Shown piece after piece: positions 3,278 through 63,878 of a DNA stretch of 64,000 nt. A program made the translations under genes and the position numbers. Origin of the DNA: Lytechinus pictus (Eukaryota); contig NC_087261.1 in assembly GCF_037042905.1 (NCBI RefSeq), positions 29,264,001 through 29,328,000 of the forward strand, read 5' to 3'. Positions within the stretch are counted from its first letter, which is position 1. Every line of letters begins with the position of its first letter. The notes under the pieces are model-generated. The model saw nothing but the letters and a program-made list of their open reading frames with translations. It searched no databases and had not been told where the DNA came from.

Positions 3278-4889
3278 AATAATACGATGAAATTATTCAA
3301 TACCTATATCATCTATTTTCCAGATTAAAAAGTGATGTCTGGCAATGTTAAATATATATATCATTATATTTACATATATCAAAGTAAAATTTTTTTTTAA
3401 CAAAACAAAATAAACAATTTAATAAATCAGCAGCATTCAAATCAATAATTTACAAATTTTTTTAATAACAAAAAATCATTTTGATCTGTAAGGGCATTAT
3501 GATAATATTTTTCCATTGGAGTCAATTCTAAAGGGCTCTGCAACTATTCATAATTTTGATTCAAAATGCTGGAATTCTGCAAGAATTAACATTGTTCCTT
3601 TATTTGTGTGGAGTTACAAAGCATTTCAGACAAAGGAAATTTGAAAGCTGTAGGCCTATGTGTCTATAAAAAATATACATCACATAAAAATCCTCAATAC
3701 ACATCCAAAATGAATTTCCTAAAATGGCAATTTTTGGTCAAGAATGTGGCATAACCACAGGCAAAGTTTCTTGAAAGTTTCTGAGCTGAGAGTGTGAACA
3801 ATATTTCCTTTTCATAATCTGAAAACAAAGTATCTAAAATGGATATAGTAGGCTTGGTGAAATTTATATGTCTAGTCAGATATCTTACGGTATTTTACTT
3901 TAAACAGAGTCAAAATGAATAATAATAAAAATACTAGTTGCACCCAGCTGACTCTTAGATCTTCCATTTTGACTAATTGGATGGAGCATATATTAAAGTA
4001 TGATAGGAGCACCAGTTCTTCTCCAATAGAACTGAATATTGTGAAGCACTAGACATTTTAAGCCCTACTTGCCCAGACCAGACTATTAAAAAAAATATGA
4101 GATGTTATTAAAATCAATGCACTCCCTGACAACTACATCACAATTTCAGTCAGATCACTACATCGGTTGTACATGTGGTCTACAGTTATCTAAGGCCAAG
4201 GAACTCTTTATGAACATTTCATTTTTTTTTCAATGGCCCAAATTCCGACGTCTAGATTAACTTAGGCCATGGTCTAACTCTACGTTACAATAAAAAATTA
4301 TGGAAAGCCAAAAAATCTCAGATTATATTTACATTGTAATGCATGTCTCCCCTCTTTATACTGCGCTCTTTCCTCGTGCTCTAATGACAAAGAGAACAAA
4401 TTCAGTAATTATTCCCTGTCAGTTATGAATGATTTGAGTGGTTAAAGAGCTGACAAACTGAACTTGTACTGTTTGAGAATACCTTTCACAATTGGCTCTC
4501 CATAGTTAAACCACATTACTTAAGAACAGAATTTAAATTATCACAGGAAGCAAACCATTATATACCAAGCCATGTGCAACTGTACATTTTATGGTACAAG
4601 TGAAGTATTAGCAGCAATTGCAAGTACAGTAAAAAAAAAGGGAACTTCAATGACATCTGTATTATTCTCTTTTATCAATTTAAGTTAACAAAACATGCAC
4701 ATAAAAGGCAAGATATTAAGCATCAATATGTTTTATGCAGCAGTAATTTTTGCCAAACTCATTACCACTTAGAGTTAAAATCCAACAATTCAGCTTTTAG
4801 TTTCAAAAAGCATGTCACTTTACAATTATTTTTTTAGTTTACGTAACCCCTAGCATGCTTTTGATTCATAAACATCCTGCCTTGGAAAC

Positions 4890-6014
4890 CTATCTCTTCT
4901 TTTCATACAACTTTATAGCACTTGCTCTCCGGGGCCTGGGTTGGTTGGGAGGCCCATCGTTGCTTATTTTGACATTTTTAAAAGATTCCTCAAACAGCAA
5001 AGGTCCAAGAGTGTCTGCACTTTGAGAACCTCTTCTGGATGGCCTGCCTGGTTGTTGTCCATTCGTCTTCTCTTGTGGAGAGTTTGATGGTGGAGATTTT
5101 GATGGCAGAGATTTTGATGGAGATTTTGATGGTGGAGAGTCTGGTGCACTTGCTTTGCTTTCCTGCTTGCCTGTGAATGCATTTGGGTAAGCATAGTCTT
5201 TCAGATTGTCCAGAAAAGAAAGAACCAGGATGCCATAGTCCACCACAATGTCCTCGACCTTCTTCTTGTCCTCCTCCTTAATCTGATCTTTGCTAAGAAC
5301 TTCTGCAACACTCAGATGGGTCATTCCCTCAAACAAAGGCAAGATGTTGGGTGAAAACTCTTCAAGGAACCTTCCAAGTATAGTGGACTTCCAGTAGCGC
5401 CGTAGGAAAGCATCAACTTGTATCTCCTTGATGATGCCATCAAAGCTCAGCAGATGCACTACAGAGAGGGCGTTACCTGCAGCTATCAAGCCTTCTGTGA
5501 GGTCTTCCATGGTGTCAAGGAGCACGGGGCCAAAGCGGATAGAGTCAGTAAAGTAAAGAGAAGCCCAAAGACATTCTGTGTCCACCAAGGCAATCAGGTC
5601 TGACTTGGGTAGGTGATAGTAGTCTTCCATGGATTCATCCAGGCTGCATACACCAAACTTCCCGGCAGAGAACTTGATCCGAGACCGATGCGGGTAGCAG
5701 AACTCTGGAAGCAGTCCGCCCATGATGTCCATCCACATCTCAACATATCCGTCTTTGCTGGAACAGACATAGCTAATCTTAGGATTTGGATCATCCTCAA
5801 CATCTGTCTTCAAATCATCGACAAGTTCCTGGATGTCTTCTTCCTTGATGCTGGAGTCGGCATGAAGCAGGACAACTTTATTCTTGCCTGTAATGGCAAT
5901 TACTGAGCAGATGCTTACTTTGGTGGTCAAGAGCTCATAATGCTGACTGCAGGTGCTTACACCATGACCCTGAACAGCCATTTTTCTCTCAGGAACTGGT
6001 TCAGCACTGTCCAT
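4890..6014 (-). CDS. Uncharacterised 374-aa protein, putative CNF1/CheD/YfiH/NTAN1-fold Cys-His deamidase-like N-terminal domain plus Ser/Pro-rich tail
   Basis: Long GC-elevated ORF in an AT-rich context. A splice acceptor (ttcttttccag, ending at 6021) lies 6 nt before the ATG at 6014 (aaaATGg), so the ORF-track start at 6044 is intronic. Motif VQG...LLTTKVSICSVIAITGKNKVVLLHADS. Tail has SPSK repeats and RRGS/RRAS sites. The gene call is fairly confident, the product call is tentative. Confidence 0.7.
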   Translation of the reverse strand: MDSAEPVPERKMAVQGHGVSTCSQHYELLTTKVSICSVIAITGKNKVVLLHADSSIKEEDIQELVDDLKTDVEDDPNPKISYVCSSKDGYVEMWMDIMGGLLPEFCYPHRSRIKFSAGKFGVCSLDESMEDYYHLPKSDLIALVDTECLWASLYFTDSIRFGPVLLDTMEDLTEGLIAAGNALSVVHLLSFDGIIKEIQVDAFLRRYWKSTILGRFLEEFSPNILPLFEGMTHLSVAEVLSKDQIKEEDKKKVEDIVVDYGILVLSFLDNLKDYAYPNAFTGKQESKASAPDSPPSKSPSKSLPSKSPPSNSPQEKTNGQQPGRPSRRGSQSADTLGPLLFEESFKNVKISNDGPPNQPRPRRASAIKLYEKKR

Positions 6015-6818
6015 TTTTAACTGGAAAAGAATTAAAATGTGCAATGAAACTGTAATAATATTGCCAAGTGGGGAAAAAATAAAGCCCTTGGAATTTCAGT
6101 ACCTGGATCATTATAAGTCACCAGCCATCCAAAACAAGCTCATTTAATACTCAAATATTTCATAATTGTCTTTGAATAATATCTAAAAGAGAGCATAGTA
6201 AACCGAAAACAATTTTATCATTTTTGGCCGAACATAATTTTAGCAAAGTGTTCATTTAAACTGGTTTTTGAAATAGAGGCCAATAACTCTTAACAATTCA
6301 ATGTTCATGACAAATATGTAGCAAGCAGAACTGCACAGCCATGAGCTTGATTTTTTTGTCTTTAAAGTATCTTTGTCAAAAAATCGATATCAACCATTAC
6401 AGACATTTGTACAAAATATTTAATAGACAAGATGGAAAATAAAGAATGAAATAGAATAATGGAAGAAAAAATATTGACAGATCTTAACTCTTAACAGATC
6501 TATGCTTGTGTTCGCTTTGGAACAATTATTCTCCATGTTTGGAAAAAAATATACACAGATACAAACAGCACAGAGAGGACACGTGTATATAAAGGCTTTG
6601 TAAAGTAAAATTATGACACTATCAAAACCTTCGACCAATCCGCTGGATTGACACTTCTAACTTATTAGTTTTAAAAATATCAAACAATTTTGTTTTAAGT
6701 TCAGACTTAATATGAAACAATATGAATCGTTTTACATATACTGTATTTCTGCAATACACAGATGTTGAAATACAATTGTATAGTGTTCAATGAGCAAGAT
6801 ATAAGGTAAATCACTTAC

Positions 6819-7265
6819 AAGTCTTGTATCGCTGAACTGAGAAAAGTCAGATGCTATTGGCAATGCAAAGATTAAATGTTCAGTCACTGTTGCTTACTGC
6901 ACTGGTGAACAAAACACGCGTCCTATACATTTAATCTTTTCTTCAAGCGGAACACTTGGAGAGTTGTCCTGCCAGGCGGGAGCACTTTCTGCCTGTCTGA
7001 CTGGATTCCAAGGACGGGCGCCCTAAAAATACGAGCAGTCGTTGTGCGTTGTCGGTGTGAAGTCTCGGCCCAGCACCACATGGTCGGAAGCGGAGGGTAA
7101 AAATACCACAGCGATTGTCCAACTGTAAAATTTGGCACCCAATCCAAGGCAAAATCCAATACATTATCTTGGCGGAAATGCAGCCATTCAGCGCCGGATG
7201 CTGCGTCTTTTAATCGCCTTGTGATTGTCGCTGTATCATAAGAGCTACCTTGTGACATCAGTCAC
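6819..7265 (-). other. Putative non-coding first exon (5' UTR) of the 4890-6014 gene; intron 6021-6818
   Basis: GC-elevated block ending in a consensus donor (gactt|gtaagt at 6818). TATA box ~30 nt upstream of the inferred start. Confidence 0.45.
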
Positions 7266-7289
7266 CTACTTCACAAAGGGCTGGATGTG

Positions 7290-7297
7290 CTTTTATA
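7290..7297 (-). promoter_or_regulatory. Candidate TATA box (TATAAAAG)
   Basis: cttttata on the plus strand, directly upstream of the putative first exon and downstream of a long pyrimidine/purine tract (7580-7680). Confidence 0.35.
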
Positions 7298-8181
7298 CAG
7301 AAGGCGATTACAACCATCATTCTTTCTTCCTCATCATCAATACTATTCATCATAGCTCTGAATAGATTCCTTTCCCTCTCTGTATCTCTCTCACTCACAC
7401 TTTTCCCCTTTGTCTGGAGATCCTGACATTTCAAGTACAACCAACTCAGCAGTGGATTTTTTTGTTGGCTCTCTCTTTCTGAAAGTGAAATAGTCCTGAG
7501 ACAGGATGCAAGCACGAGTGTTCTTTTGTTTTTAATACCGTGATCGATGATTTGTATTGATGGGGATGTGTCAGATAGCTGGCAGAGAGAGAGAGAGAGG
7601 GGAGGAAAGGAGAAAGGGAAGCAAGAGAGGGAGGGAAAGAGAGAGTTAGGAAGAGGAAGCAAAAGGGAATGAGGAGGACTCAAGAGGGTGGGTGTTATAA
7701 ATCTAAAGGGAAAGTAAGTACCAGATCTTTGAAGACAGAAGAGCATTTGGTAGGCCTACATATGAAAAAAAAGAGAGGAAATGTAATCAAGAGATAGAGA
7801 GAGCAGAGAAAAGGAGACAAATCTCAAAAACATTTTTTTTAAATTGGAGTGAGAACATACAATGTATTTTCAGAAGGGGCGATAAGGTGAATACTCTCAG
7901 CAAAGTGCAATTGCCAAACCCCAAAGACAAGGTCTCTAATGATTTTGATATCAGATGTTTATACTATTAATAAATGACAACTACAACACTTTTCTATTAC
8001 CCCTCGTCAGTACATCTTTACAATCTCTACATGTTATTGAAGCATAGCTCATTAGCAAAGGCTTTTTTAAGTACTTTTTTAGTGCAATGTAGATGCAATT
8101 GTGGAGTGCTAACAGTAACCACTATTGTCAATTTTATCTTGCACCCTTTGCTTTTAGTATAAGGTGTAGATCTATCTGTTA

Positions 8182-12508: not shown

Positions 12509-14469
12509 ATGGCTTCAAGAAAAAACAGAAATGTTCGAGGACAGAAGGCTAAGAAGAGACCTCCCGACACTCCACAACAATCTCAAGTGGCAGAAGAATC
12601 CTCTGTGCCTTCTCCTGAGGATGCAGAGACGGAGGATAGGCCTATTCAGGCCCCAATCACTGCTCAGCCACACGACTCTCCTTGTGTTATTGGTAAGTAC
12701 AGCTGAGTTAGGAATATCAAAGTGAGAAAAGCAAGTCAATATGTTTTTATAATGAATTGAATTGTAATTTTGAAATATTTGTAATCAATTCTTATCTAAA
12801 TATTTGAAGAATTTTTGAGATGGAATGGAGTTTTATGTAGGCCTAAGTCATGTAAAGCTGTTTTTTCCATTATAAATTATCAGGCACCGTGAGGCCAGGC
12901 AGCACTGCTGCTACCACCAGCATCACCGCCGTCATCACCGCCACAAACTTTACTGCAGGTTCCACATCCACTGCCTCCACAGCTGCTACTCCTGCTACTG
13001 CAGATGAAGATGACGATGAAGATGAGACAGAAAAAGGCAGGGACACTGATGGAGAAAATGCCCAGCCCCCTGCAAAGAGAAGGCGTAAGGCCCCCGAGGC
13101 CTCCTGTCGTCCTTTCCGAAGAAGAAATGGTGGAGGTAGCTGAATTCCTCAAGGAGAACGATAGCCTGTATAACAAATCAAGAGACCTCTGGAGGGACAC
13201 CCAGGCCAGAGCACGTCTGTGGGATCAGCAAGGACAGGCCATGGACAAGACGGGGTTGGAGCTGCAACAGTGGTACGAGAGTCTGAGGACAAAGCTTGGA
13301 CGGCTAAAGAAGAAAGCACAAAAGAGTGGATCTGGAGCTGAGGTCCTTATGCCAACAAGCGCCTGCTGCAGCTTTTTGACTTCCTCACCCCTCACATGTA
13401 CGTTGTGCAAAGGAGGAACATAGTTAGTGTAAGTATACTTAACAACAACAAAAAACCAAAAAAAATTGTGAAATACATCATATCACGAAAAATTGAATAA
13501 AATTTAACAAAAAATTATTTTGAATTATTTTACATTAACTTTGATTTATATCTTAACATTTCCTCATCTCAAAACATTCTTTGCTTTGTATCTTTTCAGC
13601 TACAGGAACGTATTGAGGCCAGAGGACCAGCACCTCGGGAGGAGGAGGAAGAAGAAGAGGACCAGGAGCGAGGGGTGGAAAGACAGGTAGAGCCAGCCCA
13701 GCCACAAAACCAGGAGGAAGCTACCACTAATCAGCAGTCTTTAGATGGAGCCAGCAAGGAAAGCACTCCATTCCCCAGGGACAGCAGGTACAACAAGGGT
13801 AAGGCACCACAAAAGTCCCCGAGACAGCAGGAGACGGATGTTCTGGATCATCTTATCAAGAACCAGCAAAACAGCGAGCAGCTGATGGCCCTTTCTGCCC
13901 AGGTGTTGCGTACACTTGACAGGCCCCAGTCACAGCATCCAGACCGTGAGCAGTTCACTAACTACGTCGGTTCGGTGCTGCAGCAACTCCCTGATGACTT
14001 GTATAGGAAGGCAAACAGACTGCTGAGCAACTTGCTCCTTGACATACAAGATGAAGCCAGCACCAGACGTCAAGACTCTCTGTTCATGCAGCATCGACAC
14101 ACATCACTGCAACCTCCCTCGGATCCTCCAATAGCAAGACCTGGTACAAGTTCAGGGGTCACTCAACCCCCCTGCGGAGATGGATGGCAGCCCCCACCAC
14201 ACCTTTGGCCTACCAACCCAGTTTCCACCAGCGTTTGGCACTCCATGAAGCAGTCCTACATGGCGAACGTGATACCTGGGATGAACGACCATTCAACGCC
14301 CTCCTACACCACCATGCAGCCACGCTCCGCCAGCGCCCCTTCTCTCTCAGCAGGCAGAAGTTCTAGGGAGTCAAGTGACTTTAGTATGACAAGCTTCTTG
14401 GCAAGCCTGAATGATTCATCTCAGACGCCCCAGCAGCAGCAGACCCAGCAATGTTCACAGGAAGATTAG
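12509..14469 (+). pseudogene. Harbinger Myb/SANT (MADF) DNA-binding protein gene, 3 exons (12509-12692, 12884-13428, 13600-14469), two frameshifts in exon 2
   Basis: GT-AG introns with compatible phases. MADF-like EFLKENDSLYNKSRDLWRDTQARARLW...WYESLRTKLGRL. BESS-like REQFTNYVGSVLQQLPDDLYRKANRLLSNLL. Frame changes at ~13095 (C run) and ~13349. Confidence 0.85.
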
Positions 14470-15844: not shown

Positions 15845-17146
15845 TCAAATCATCCTCTCCTGCCAAGGAACTGCTCCTCCAAGAGGATTGTTGAAGTACA
15901 GTCTTAGGGTTTCACGCTGTGCTTTGGCCTCTGCTGTGTCGCGGAAGGGTCCTCTTGGAGTTGGTACTTCATGCATGGGAGCCATGTTCCTCCATTCTCC
16001 TGGTATGATGTTATGGTCGGTATCCTCTGTATCCAGCTGACCATGGTGCATGGCTGGGTGCCGTATTCCAATCAGGTTGTGGAGACAGACACATGTTTCT
16101 ATGATGTTACGCACAACATCAGGTTGTTGCTGTAGTGTTCCTAGAAGACACTGGAATCTGGCTGCTAGTATTCCGAAGGCATTTTCCACGACTCTTCGGG
16201 CTCTACTTATGCGATAGTTGTATATCCGCTCTGTACGATTCAGGTTCTTTCTCGAGTAGGGCTTCATCATGTGGGTTCGCAAAGCAAAGGCGTCATCCCC
16301 GATCATGAAATATGGCATGTTCTGGTTGTCATTGGTCATTGGCTCAGGTGGGGGGAATCCTATTTGACCACTCTCCACTGTCTCTTTGAGCTCAGATGCA
16401 TTGTATATATGCGCGTCAGACATGTGTCCTTGAGCACCGGTGTCTATCCACAAGAACCGGTAGTTAGCATCAACAAGTGCCATGAGGACTACTGAGAAGA
16501 AATGTTTATAATTATGGTAGAGACTGCCGGTGTTCTCTGGTTTCCTGAGTGCCACGTGCTTGCCATCAAGTGCCCCCATTACATGTGGAACGTTCCAATG
16601 CCTCTCGTATTCTTCAGCAATTGCACGCCATTCTTGTTCAGTGGTGGGACACTGGATCACTTCATTAGCATACTCATCCACTATGGCTTGACAGACTTCG
16701 GGGATAAACTTGCAAATGGTTTCTCGAGCAACCCTGAAACTGTATGACAGTGACGGATACCGATCGCCAGCTGCAAGGTGCCTTATGGTACAGGCTAACT
16801 TGAGACCAGGTTCAAGGGCTCTCCTGGCATTGGTATCGTCCTTCGTGAGCCTTGGTGCGAGTCTCTGGAGTAGTTCATCAAAAAATTCTGACGTAACTCT
16901 CAAGAAATTGAAAAATGCCGTTGTATCCTCCATTCTTAGTTCATTCAAGAGTCTGGTGTAGTGCCCATATAACAGCCTTCTCTCAGCTTGCAGCCATGGT
17001 CGAACCCAATAACGACGTGGTCTTCTTCGCCTTTTTCTCAGCCTCTTTCTCAGGACCTGAAGGGCTATTGCGTCTTGTTGCATAGTTTGTTGCTGGAGCA
17101 TAAAAACACAGCCCAGGGCTGCAGCGTTGCGAAGAAGTTGATCCAT
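15845..17146 (-). CDS. PIF/Harbinger DDE transposase (HARBI1-like), 433 aa, apparently intact
   Basis: Motifs GALDGKHV, SVVLMALVDANYRF, GHMSD, MIGDDAF, YNYRISRARRVVENAFGILAARF. N-terminal RRYWVRPW and HTH-like region. Confidence 0.95.
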   Translation of the reverse strand: MDQLLRNAAALGCVFMLQQQTMQQDAIALQVLRKRLRKRRRRPRRYWVRPWLQAERRLLYGHYTRLLNELRMEDTTAFFNFLRVTSEFFDELLQRLAPRLTKDDTNARRALEPGLKLACTIRHLAAGDRYPSLSYSFRVARETICKFIPEVCQAIVDEYANEVIQCPTTEQEWRAIAEEYERHWNVPHVMGALDGKHVALRKPENTGSLYHNYKHFFSVVLMALVDANYRFLWIDTGAQGHMSDAHIYNASELKETVESGQIGFPPPEPMTNDNQNMPYFMIGDDAFALRTHMMKPYSRKNLNRTERIYNYRISRARRVVENAFGILAARFQCLLGTLQQQPDVVRNIIETCVCLHNLIGIRHPAMHHGQLDTEDTDHNIIPGEWRNMAPMHEVPTPRGPFRDTAEAKAQRETLRLYFNNPLGGAVPWQERMI

Positions 17147-55995: not shown

Positions 55996-57204
55996 TTACT
56001 TGGTTTCCCTATCCCCAAATAGTGGAGCCTCTGCGAGCTGACCTCTGGTGAAAAGCTCTCGCACAGCTGTACGGAATTCAGGGTAGCGAACAGTATAGAT
56101 GATAGGGTTGGCGCATGAGTTGCAGAATCCTAGAATTGAAAGAGCGCGGTGAAACGGGCTATAAAGGTATAAATCGGGAATGAATCCTAGATTGAAAGCA
56201 AGGTAGACTATATTAGCAGGCCCCCAGCAGATCAGAAAGATCAAAACTACGATAAATAGTGTTTGCAGAACGCGTTTCTTGGCGATGAGATGTCGGGTTG
56301 AAGGATTGGATATGTCAAGCTGTTTCGCTTCACCTAGTTGAAGTCGTGCCTGGCGATGCAATGCATGTGCTGTAAGGACTTGAAAGTTTATTGTCAGGAT
56401 TGCTGGAAAGAGGAACTCAATCAGGAAAAGGAACACACCCATGGCAATCTGGAACCTTCTGGGATAAATCACTCTGCACTGCGCTGCAGATGGGTCAACA
56501 GTCGAGATGAAAAACAGGAACGAAGTTAACATGAAAGCGGTGAACCAAAGGCAGATTATGGCAATTGAGATTCGTCTTGGAGCTAGAAGTTCTTTGCAAC
56601 GGAATGGGTACACCACGGCAATATAGCGTTCAATGGGTATGAAGGTGAGTGTAAAAATAGATGCAGTAACCGAAACCCACATGAACATTGATGTGTACAC
56701 TACCTTGCAGTAAAAATTGCCGAGTGCAGTCGAAGGAACTCGATTTGTTGGTGGCAGCGGCACCATAAAGATCGACGTGATAAGATCGGCAACTGCCAGG
56801 GCGCCAACCAGTGTGTCCGTGGATCTACTCTTCTTTCGTCTTTGAAAAATGATTATGATGACAAGAGAGTTGCCAACGATACCAAAAAGTGCAGTTGTCA
56901 TCTGTAAAATGACCCACCAGGACCAGGTTATCGGTTGCCAAAGCCAGGATATCGAAGTAGGCGATACGACATTCTTATCCCCATTCTCTTCCGTGGATTC
57001 AATAAGAGAATAATCCTGAGAGTCATTCGTTGAATCTTGAACCGATCCCTCAATGGTTTGCTCTGTCCAAATCTCAGTATAAGAATCCATAGAGGTGTTT
57101 TGCATCCAATCTATCCATTCCTGCCCAACGTCACTGTCAGAAAACGTTTGTCCAACGTAGCTCTTTAAAAAGAGGAGCAGAATAAAGCAAATAATTTCTC
57201 CCAT
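55996..57204 (-). CDS. Intronless rhodopsin-class GPCR (galanin/allatostatin-receptor-like), 402 aa
   Basis: Signal-peptide-like N terminus, 7 TM segments, GN (TM1), LAVAD (TM2), C-ERY (TM3), CWGP (TM6), NSCANPIIY (TM7). Confidence 0.95.
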   Translation of the reverse strand: MGEIICFILLLFLKSYVGQTFSDSDVGQEWIDWMQNTSMDSYTEIWTEQTIEGSVQDSTNDSQDYSLIESTEENGDKNVVSPTSISWLWQPITWSWWVILQMTTALFGIVGNSLVIIIIFQRRKKSRSTDTLVGALAVADLITSIFMVPLPPTNRVPSTALGNFYCKVVYTSMFMWVSVTASIFTLTFIPIERYIAVVYPFRCKELLAPRRISIAIICLWFTAFMLTSFLFFISTVDPSAAQCRVIYPRRFQIAMGVFLFLIEFLFPAILTINFQVLTAHALHRQARLQLGEAKQLDISNPSTRHLIAKKRVLQTLFIVVLIFLICWGPANIVYLAFNLGFIPDLYLYSPFHRALSILGFCNSCANPIIYTVRYPEFRTAVRELFTRGQLAEAPLFGDRETK

Positions 57205-62660: not shown

Positions 62661-63878
62661 TTACTTGGTTTCTCTATCTCCAAATAGTGGAGCCTCTGCG
62701 AGCTGAGCTCTGGTGAAGAGCCCTCGGACAGCAGTACGGAATTCAGGGTAGCGAACAGTATAGATAATAGGGTTGGCGCATGAGTTGCAGAACCCTAGGG
62801 TTGCAAGAGCGCGGTTAAACGGGCTATAAGGGTACGAATCTGGAATGAATCCTAGCTTGAAAGCAAGAAAGATTGTCTTAGCAGGTCCCCAGCAGATCAG
62901 AAAGATCAAAACTACGATGAATAGTGTTTGCAGGACGCATTTCTTGGCGATGAGATGTCGGAATGAAGGATTGGATCTGTCAAGCTGTTTCGCTTCACCT
63001 AGTTGAAGACGTGCCTGCCGATGCAATACACGTGCTGTAAGGATTTGAAATGTTATTGTCAGGATCGCTGGAAAGAGGAACCCAAACAGGTAGATGAACA
63101 CACCCATGGCATGCCTGACATGCTGGAATCCTTTGGGGTACATCAATCTACAGCGCGCTGTAGATGGGTCAACTGTCGAGATGAAAAACGGGAACGAATT
63201 TAACATGAAAGCGGTGAACCAGAGGCAGATTATGGCAATTGAGATTCGTCTTGGAGCTAGAAGTTCTTTGCAACGGAATGGGTACACCACGGCAATATAG
63301 CGTTCAATGGGTATGAAGGTGAGTGTATAAATAGATGCATTAACCGAAACCCACATGAACATTGATGTGTACACTACCTTGCAGTAAAAAATGCCGAGTG
63401 CAGTCGAAGGCACTCGATTTGTTGGTGACAGTGGCACCATAAAGATCGACGTGATAAGATCGGCAACTGCCAGGGCGCCAACCAGTGTGTCCGTGGATCT
63501 ACTCTTTTTTCGTCTTTGGAAAATGATTATGATGACAAGAGAGTTGCCAACGATACCAAAAAGTGCAGAAATCATCTGTAAAATGACCCACCAGGACCAG
63601 GTTATCGGTTGCCAAAGCCAGGACATCGAAGTAGGCAATACGACATTCTTATCCCCATTCTCTTCCGTGGATTCAATAAGAGAATAATCCTGAGAGTCAT
63701 TCGTTGAATCTTGAACTGATCCTTCGATGGTTTGATCTGTCCAAATCTCAGTATAAGTATCCATAGAAGTGTTTTGCATCCAATCTATCCATTCCTGCCC
63801 AACGTCACTGTCAGAAAACGTTTGTCCAACGTAGCTCTTTAAAAAGAGGAGCAGAATAAAGCAAATAATTTCTCCCAT
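62661..63878 (-). CDS. Intronless rhodopsin-class GPCR paralog, 405 aa
   Basis: Same motifs as 55996-57204, ~90% identical, with a 3-aa insertion in ECL2. Confidence 0.95.
   Translation of the reverse strand: MGEIICFILLLFLKSYVGQTFSDSDVGQEWIDWMQNTSMDTYTEIWTDQTIEGSVQDSTNDSQDYSLIESTEENGDKNVVLPTSMSWLWQPITWSWWVILQMISALFGIVGNSLVIIIIFQRRKKSRSTDTLVGALAVADLITSIFMVPLSPTNRVPSTALGIFYCKVVYTSMFMWVSVNASIYTLTFIPIERYIAVVYPFRCKELLAPRRISIAIICLWFTAFMLNSFPFFISTVDPSTARCRLMYPKGFQHVRHAMGVFIYLFGFLFPAILTITFQILTARVLHRQARLQLGEAKQLDRSNPSFRHLIAKKCVLQTLFIVVLIFLICWGPAKTIFLAFKLGFIPDSYPYSPFNRALATLGFCNSCANPIIYTVRYPEFRTAVRGLFTRAQLAEAPLFGDRETK

Follow-up and report, generated by a model that had tools for sequence, protein, structure and literature searches.

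An undescribed, strongly constrained sea urchin gene family with an invariant Cys-His pair and a possible amidohydrolase-type centre

Positions 4890-6014 of the window (the whole 64-kb stretch of DNA analysed here) carry, on the reverse strand, a functional, single-copy protein-coding gene that belongs to a small, taxonomically restricted family. Judged by its sequence, the family is undescribed and lineage-restricted, occurring in echinoid sea urchins and in one further eukaryote (represented below by the protein P0004), and it has no demonstrable membership in a known family. A thiol-based amidohydrolase-like enzyme, centred on a predicted hairpin that holds Thr30, Cys36, His51 and Asp53, is the favoured but tentative reading of its product, drawn from the conservation and layout of these residues. 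The coding sequence and the parts of the protein are:

4890 to 6014, reverse strand: complete coding sequence, 374 codons followed by a TAG stop at 4890-4892, in one uninterrupted open reading frame.
5181 to 6014, reverse strand: conserved globular region, residues 1-278, with dN/dS of 0.10-0.11 and 61 invariant columns in four lineages.
5955 to 5987, reverse strand: invariant N-terminal motif, residues 10-20 (R10, K11, A13, Q15, G16, H17, G18, V19, S20), in four lineages including P0004.
5850 to 5933, reverse strand: candidate active-site or metal-site hairpin, residues 28-55, from invariant residues and predicted strands.
4893 to 5180, reverse strand: Ser/Pro/Lys-rich low-complexity tail, residues 279-374, with pLDDT below 35 and dN/dS of 0.23-0.28.
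5025 to 5036, reverse strand: R-R-G-S, a basophilic kinase-type motif in the tail.
4920 to 4931, reverse strand: R-R-A-S, a basophilic kinase-type motif in the tail.

For the complete open reading frame dN/dS is 0.13, which indicates purifying selection; by part, residues 1-280 have values of 0.10-0.11 and the tail has values of 0.23-0.28. The start codon, the first ATG directly after a pyrimidine tract and AG, lies in a good initiation context with A at -3 and G at +4. The frame has a G+C content of 47%, against 37% for the whole window, and is strongly depleted in CpG (observed/expected 0.28, against 0.71 in the window). The coding region is an uninterrupted frame in Lytechinus, Strongylocentrotus and Diadema, so that the single coding exon proposed in the first-pass annotation is borne out in three echinoid genera. 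No paralogue is found within the 64-kb window or the related loci. With an N-terminus that has no signal peptide-like features, the predicted product is a cytosolic-type protein. A literature search on the gene identifiers found no paper that mentions them.

How widely is the family distributed? The nearest database protein is Lytechinus pictus LOC129280721 (99% identity), followed by Strongylocentrotus-group orthologues at 76-79%, S. purpuratus LOC105447550 among them, and by a Diadema antillarum orthologue at 56%. In L. pictus, S. purpuratus and D. antillarum the annotation reads solely “uncharacterized protein”. An exhaustive HMMER scan covering 1.84 billion representative proteins returned only two true relatives, the Strongylocentrotus cluster and P0004, a protein of 293 amino acids with 30% identity across residues 9-219 of the urchin protein. 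P0004 has a 99%-identical partner, P0006, in the same ENA assembly (ERZ25069859), and the two lie on a 424-kb contig (21x coverage) and a 318-kb contig (19x). Both contigs carry reverse-transcriptase repeats that recur on many other long contigs of this assembly, which identifies them as two haplotypes of one diploid eukaryote; tblastx revealed no shared flanks, and the clusters of the repeat proteins occur in ENA only. Profile searches and a search seeded with P0004 brought no further relatives, and the three word-indexed searches and the exhaustive one together found four lineages only. The 2693-residue repeat protein P0005 was rejected as a relative, BLASTP returning nothing and the HMMER score being the sum of 11 weak repeats. 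The relatives are eukaryotic only (three echinoid genera and P0004/P0006), with no bacterial matches; the first-pass annotation had considered bacterial effectors as possible nearest hits.

On two contigs of ERZ25069859 (L001 and L022) the gene calling read TGA as sense, and many of the called open reading frames contain in-frame TGA; most of the called neighbours of P0004 on these contigs are therefore regarded as artefacts. P0004 itself has zero internal TGA codons.

Across the four lineages, 61 columns are invariant within residues 1-280. In the hairpin these are L28, T30, T31, C36, L49, L50, H51, A52, D53 and S55. Invariant residues further downstream include Y82, C84, C106, R110, H134, L135, P136, D139 and D145, and also G162, P163, L165, L166, D167, D171, D192 and E218. 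Three Cys and three His are invariant in the first 134 residues (H17, C36, H51, C84, C106, H134). The reading of the N-terminus in the first-pass annotation proves correct: V14-Q15-G16 is followed by twelve residues and then by the segment from L29 to C36, with His51 standing 15 residues past Cys36 (codons at 5862-5864 and 5907-5909, respectively). Both residues are kept in all four lineages, even in the 30%-identical P0004. Together with Thr30, Thr31 and Asp53 they are invariant in Lytechinus, Strongylocentrotus, Diadema and P0004, and the two invariant threonines lie at -6 (Thr30) and -5 (Thr31) relative to Cys36.

Is this arrangement more than coincidence? The motif alone is not beyond chance, a Cys followed by a His at +15-17 occurring in 35% of shuffles of residues 1-280. 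Conservation of Thr30, Thr31, Cys36, His51 and Asp53, unlike the motif alone, exceeds chance. Under label permutation over the 61 invariant columns, the Cys-His dyad arises in 7.9% of trials, and the dyad together with a Ser or Thr at -5 or -6 in 0.56%, the latter by a criterion picked after seeing the data.

Structure prediction places these residues in a suggestive geometry, within models of low quality. The AlphaFold2 models are unreliable both for the full length (4 sequences, pLDDT 33) and for residues 1-280 (8 sequences, pLDDT 49), and only the helical residues 200-260 are confident, with pLDDT of about 80. In the predicted secondary structure, mostly of low pLDDT, the globular region would be mixed strand and helix over about residues 1-199 and then helical over about 200-267. 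Despite the low overall reliability, one feature is stable in both models, a strand-turn-strand at 37-43 and 46-52; Cys36 is predicted just ahead of its first strand, and its second strand is predicted to end with His51. The same low-confidence models continue with a helix at 58-68 and then a strand ending at Cys84. From the strand pairing, Cys36 and His51 are predicted to lie at one end of the hairpin and to share a sheet face. Foldseek searches of the PDB with these models (pLDDT 33 and 49) gave nothing at E < 0.1, the top match being pesticin with a TM-score of 0.15, and the matches to pesticin, DUF62 and DegV were dropped as noise from unreliable models. Since the models are too poor, the Foldseek outcome is uninformative.

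How would a centre of this kind work? If the protein is a thiol-based amidohydrolase, its globular region would be the enzyme and the strand-turn-strand hairpin the framework of its centre. The thiol nucleophile would be Cys36, where the chain enters the first strand. His51, where the chain leaves the second strand on the same side of the sheet, would be the general base, and orienting this histidine or stabilising the oxyanion might fall to Asp53, Thr30 and Thr31. The chemistry would then be of the Cys/His/(Ser or Thr) kind and consist of side-chain amide hydrolysis, as in CheD and NTAN1, with the invariant C84, C106, H17 and H134 perhaps completing the pocket or binding a metal.

The domain could also be a different enzyme or a small-molecule-binding fold, unrelated to CNF1/YfiH and with a coincidental Cys-His spacing; this reading is about as plausible as the amidohydrolase one. 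The frequencies of the dyad given above (35% of shuffles for the spacing, 7.9% of permutations for the invariant pair) are in keeping with such a coincidence, and many more invariant polar residues are spread across positions 82-218 (Y82, R110, H134, D139, D145, D167, D171, D192, E218). A borderline PDB match of residues 24-90 of the echinoid-only profile to 2nwi_A (“Hypothetical protein”, E 0.048) points in the same direction; however, it was lost once P0004 was added to the profile and has been rejected, and no other family emerged from any library. Searches of Pfam, NCBIfam, PADLOC and PHROGs gave only noise for the window protein and its relatives, and five PDB sequence searches, with single sequences and with profiles at E up to 10, gave no convincing match. 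Two further PDB matches, 2g7h_A (E 0.88) and 3j46_n (E 0.091), were judged to be chance.

Direct comparisons with proteins of the suspected fold were made against YfiH of E. coli K-12 (NC_000913) and nine CheD proteins encoded on plasmids of non-pathogenic bacteria. By hhalign, the urchin family matches CheD with a probability of 0.3% (0.18% and E 0.33 for the N-terminal domain alone) and E. coli YfiH with one of 0.33%, in an alignment that leaves the conserved Cys residues unpaired. A CheD HMM run on the urchin family by hmmsearch gives negative bit scores (P 0.11-0.15). The best local hhalign alignment (residues 13-40, E 0.33) sets Cys36 on the catalytic Cys of CheD. CheD and YfiH are known to share one fold, yet the control comparison between these two gives a probability of just 0.06%. 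As the control also fails, the negative profile results carry little weight against the fold hypothesis. A CNF1/YfiH fold, an alpha-beta-beta sandwich, with deamidase chemistry is possible for the urchin protein but unproven. Of the outcomes that the first-pass annotation named as speaking against its reading none was obtained, and neither were those that would have established it. The absence of Pfam matches does argue that the protein is not an orthologue of NTAN1 or of LACC1/YfiH, in agreement with the first impression of the sequence.

Could the conserved cysteines and histidines serve something other than catalysis? H17, C36, H51, C84, C106 and H134, together with Asp53, might coordinate a structural metal, zinc for example, or be paired in disulphides, in a non-catalytic domain that acts as a scaffold or adaptor with the tail as its working end. 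Three invariant Cys and three invariant His within 134 residues would suit a structural metal site equally well, no catalytic-family signature was found, and the small-residue motif of the nucleophile loop is absent. The tail adds to this case. It is rich in Ser, Pro and Lys (17, 15 and 11 per 96 residues) and less constrained than the globular part, but its final 13 residues, R-R-A-S among them, hardly vary between the three echinoid genera. The conserved basic motif at the C-terminus and the R-R-x-S sites would point to a regulatory or interaction role. However, the tail is absent from P0004, which nevertheless keeps the Cys/His-bearing domain; this argues that the conserved function resides in the domain. 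The spacings of the potential ligands are also unlike those of a classical zinc finger, and no Pfam zinc-binding match was obtained. A purely structural role for these residues is only slightly less plausible than the amidohydrolase reading. For the amidohydrolase reading, the R-R-x-S sites of the tail would permit control by basophilic kinases, and phospho-regulation of the tail may reasonably be supposed from these motifs.

Upstream of the start codon, the same strand holds the following elements:

6021 to 6039, reverse strand: candidate 3' splice acceptor, a pyrimidine tract with AG at 6022-6021, six bases before the ATG (sequence pattern).
6897 and 6818, reverse strand: candidate splice donors (pattern scan).
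6984 to 7667, reverse strand: conserved non-coding block, 73% identical over 689 nt to positions 3994-4627 of the S. purpuratus locus L003 (E 1e-100).
7297 to 7291, reverse strand: TATAAAA, inside the conserved non-coding block.

The 73% identity of the upstream block compares with a synonymous divergence of about 0.9, and few of its indels have a length divisible by three, which marks the block as non-coding. It is probably the promoter together with a first non-coding exon. Either of the candidate donors at 6897 and 6818, joined to the acceptor at 6021, would give an intron in the 5' UTR, as the first-pass annotation had proposed. The Logan contigs L004, L007 and L008 were considered as spliced transcripts proving this intron and were rejected, being colinear with the genomic sequence of the window. 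Downstream of the TATA-like element, the block contains several perfectly conserved islands of 10-20 nt, among them two inverted CCAAT-like (ATTGG) sites and one GATA-like site, and is a candidate cis-regulatory module. A further island of 32 nt (3550-3581, reverse strand), some 1.3 kb past the stop codon and 90% identical to L003 11772-11802, may be a 3' UTR element. In S. purpuratus, a 4.3-kb insertion with 20-nt terminal inverted repeats lies upstream of the orthologue (L003 5324-9643). Neither the window nor the genomic contigs L004, L007 and L008, which are of the Strongylocentrotus group, contain this insertion, and it accounts for the splice-like gap of these contigs against S. purpuratus. 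Its inverted-repeat ends and its absence elsewhere identify it as a DNA transposon, sitting within the probable 5' UTR intron.

Several other features share the window. Two tandem, intronless open reading frames for rhodopsin-family GPCRs (55996-57204 and 62661-63878, both on the reverse strand; 402 and 405 aa; 7tm_1 E about 1e-42) have near-identical N-terminal halves, and the pair looks like a recent tandem duplication. An uninterrupted 433-aa frame at 15845-17146 (reverse strand) matches DDE_Tnp_4, the PIF/Harbinger-type transposase, over its full length (E 3e-32). About 2.4 kb from it, at 13004-13423 on the forward strand, lies a frame with a MADF/Myb-like DNA-binding domain, and a MADF/Myb-like protein is the usual second gene of Harbinger elements. 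An 892-aa frame at 45971-48649 (reverse strand), with no Pfam match, holds an extended series of degenerate acidic repeats, each roughly 15 residues in length.

How did a coding region without introns come about? Retroposition of a multi-exon parent gene long ago would account for a coding region that is uninterrupted in three genera and in P0004. Against this, the exhaustive search returned orthologues only, and neither a paralogue nor a parent turned up in the window or the related loci. The GPCR neighbours are likewise intronless, so the absence of introns is not unusual in this region, and a retroposed origin appears very unlikely. Horizontal acquisition of a bacterial toxin- or effector-type deamidase, which the first-pass annotation had raised on the strength of the motif resemblance and the intronless coding region, is highly improbable and finds no support, since no prokaryotic relative occurs among the 1.84 billion representative proteins of the HMMER scan, 185,579 prokaryotic genomes (one per species, GTDB), the JGI metagenomes or PADLOC, PHROGs and NCBIfam, and the gene has a conserved upstream non-coding block, a G+C content of 47% with a CpG ratio of 0.28, and a presence common to echinoids as distant as Diadema.

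How does the urchin protein compare with the Cys-His deamidases already described? The catalytic triad is Thr21/Cys27/His44 in CheD and Ser69/Cys75/His92 in NTAN1, placing a Ser or Thr at -6 and the His at +17 from the Cys in both, and BLF1 likewise has a Ser or Thr about six residues ahead of its Cys (PMC7022378). The urchin family resembles CheD in two respects upstream of the Cys, a Gln-Gly some 20 residues away and a Thr at -5 or -6. In the two families alike, the Cys enters a hydrophobic strand that is followed by a turn and by a second strand ending in His, an arrangement which for the urchin protein is predicted, and local hhalign and HMM alignments set the invariant urchin Cys on the catalytic Cys of CheD. 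However, the similarity does not rise above noise (probability 0.18-0.3%, P about 0.1-0.3). The His stands at +17 in all nine CheD proteins and at +15 in the urchin family, while L-G-S-C, present in 9/9 CheD proteins, is replaced by V-S-I-C or L-R-T-C. The sequence around the CheD His has no counterpart in the urchin protein, which adds about 110 helical residues and a disordered tail, is eukaryotic, and stands outside any chemotaxis context.

NTAN1 is, like the urchin protein, eukaryotic and cytosolic, with a hydroxyl residue at -6, a His about 15-17 residues past the Cys and an appended C-terminal region. Differently from NTAN1, which is widespread and has a spacing of 17, the urchin family is restricted and has one of 15; it gives no NTAN1 match in Pfam or among PDB sequences (6A0E and related entries being in the PDB). 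By sequence alone NTAN1 itself resembled nothing until its structure was solved (PMC7022378). In the bacterial toxins CNF1 and BLF1 the nucleophiles are Cys866 and Cys94, respectively, within an L-S-G-C loop (PMC8960835). Compared with them by this literature motif, the urchin family shares a Cys nucleophile, for which Cys36 is the candidate, but has no L-S-G-C loop, no bacterial relatives and no library matches. According to the first-pass annotation, the Cys-His spacing of CNF1 is 15. With YfiH/PgeF and the C-terminal domain of LACC1 (Pfam Cu-oxidase_4) only the general idea of a Cys/His centre is shared, there being no Pfam match and an hhalign probability of 0.33%.

Taken at its most specific, the amidohydrolase reading would make the urchin family a previously unrecognised eukaryotic branch of the CheD/NTAN1-type Cys-His amidohydrolases, too divergent to be recognised from sequence, as was NTAN1 itself, with a hairpin shortened to +15, an added helical domain, a kinase-regulated tail and a deamidation activity found in sea urchins and one or more other eukaryotes alone. 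In this full form the proposal is rather unlikely. To our knowledge, only a few protein deamidases have the CheD/NTAN1/CNF1 fold, and every known example governs an important switch. These switches are the maturation of chemoreceptors, N-degron targeting and the action of toxins on GTPases and eIF4A. A further member in an animal would, if real, mean that a classic model of developmental biology has a regulated deamidation not known so far. Should the deamidase reading prove wrong, a strongly constrained, undescribed family without a structural template is still a reasonable target for structure determination. The gene is one among many lineage-restricted uncharacterised genes, with no link to a toxin. 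It is like other echinoderm orphan genes in its lack of domain matches, its narrow distribution and its “uncharacterized” annotation; it differs from them in its unusually strong constraint, in its dense invariant Cys, His and Asp residues, and in having a 30%-identical relative in another eukaryote.
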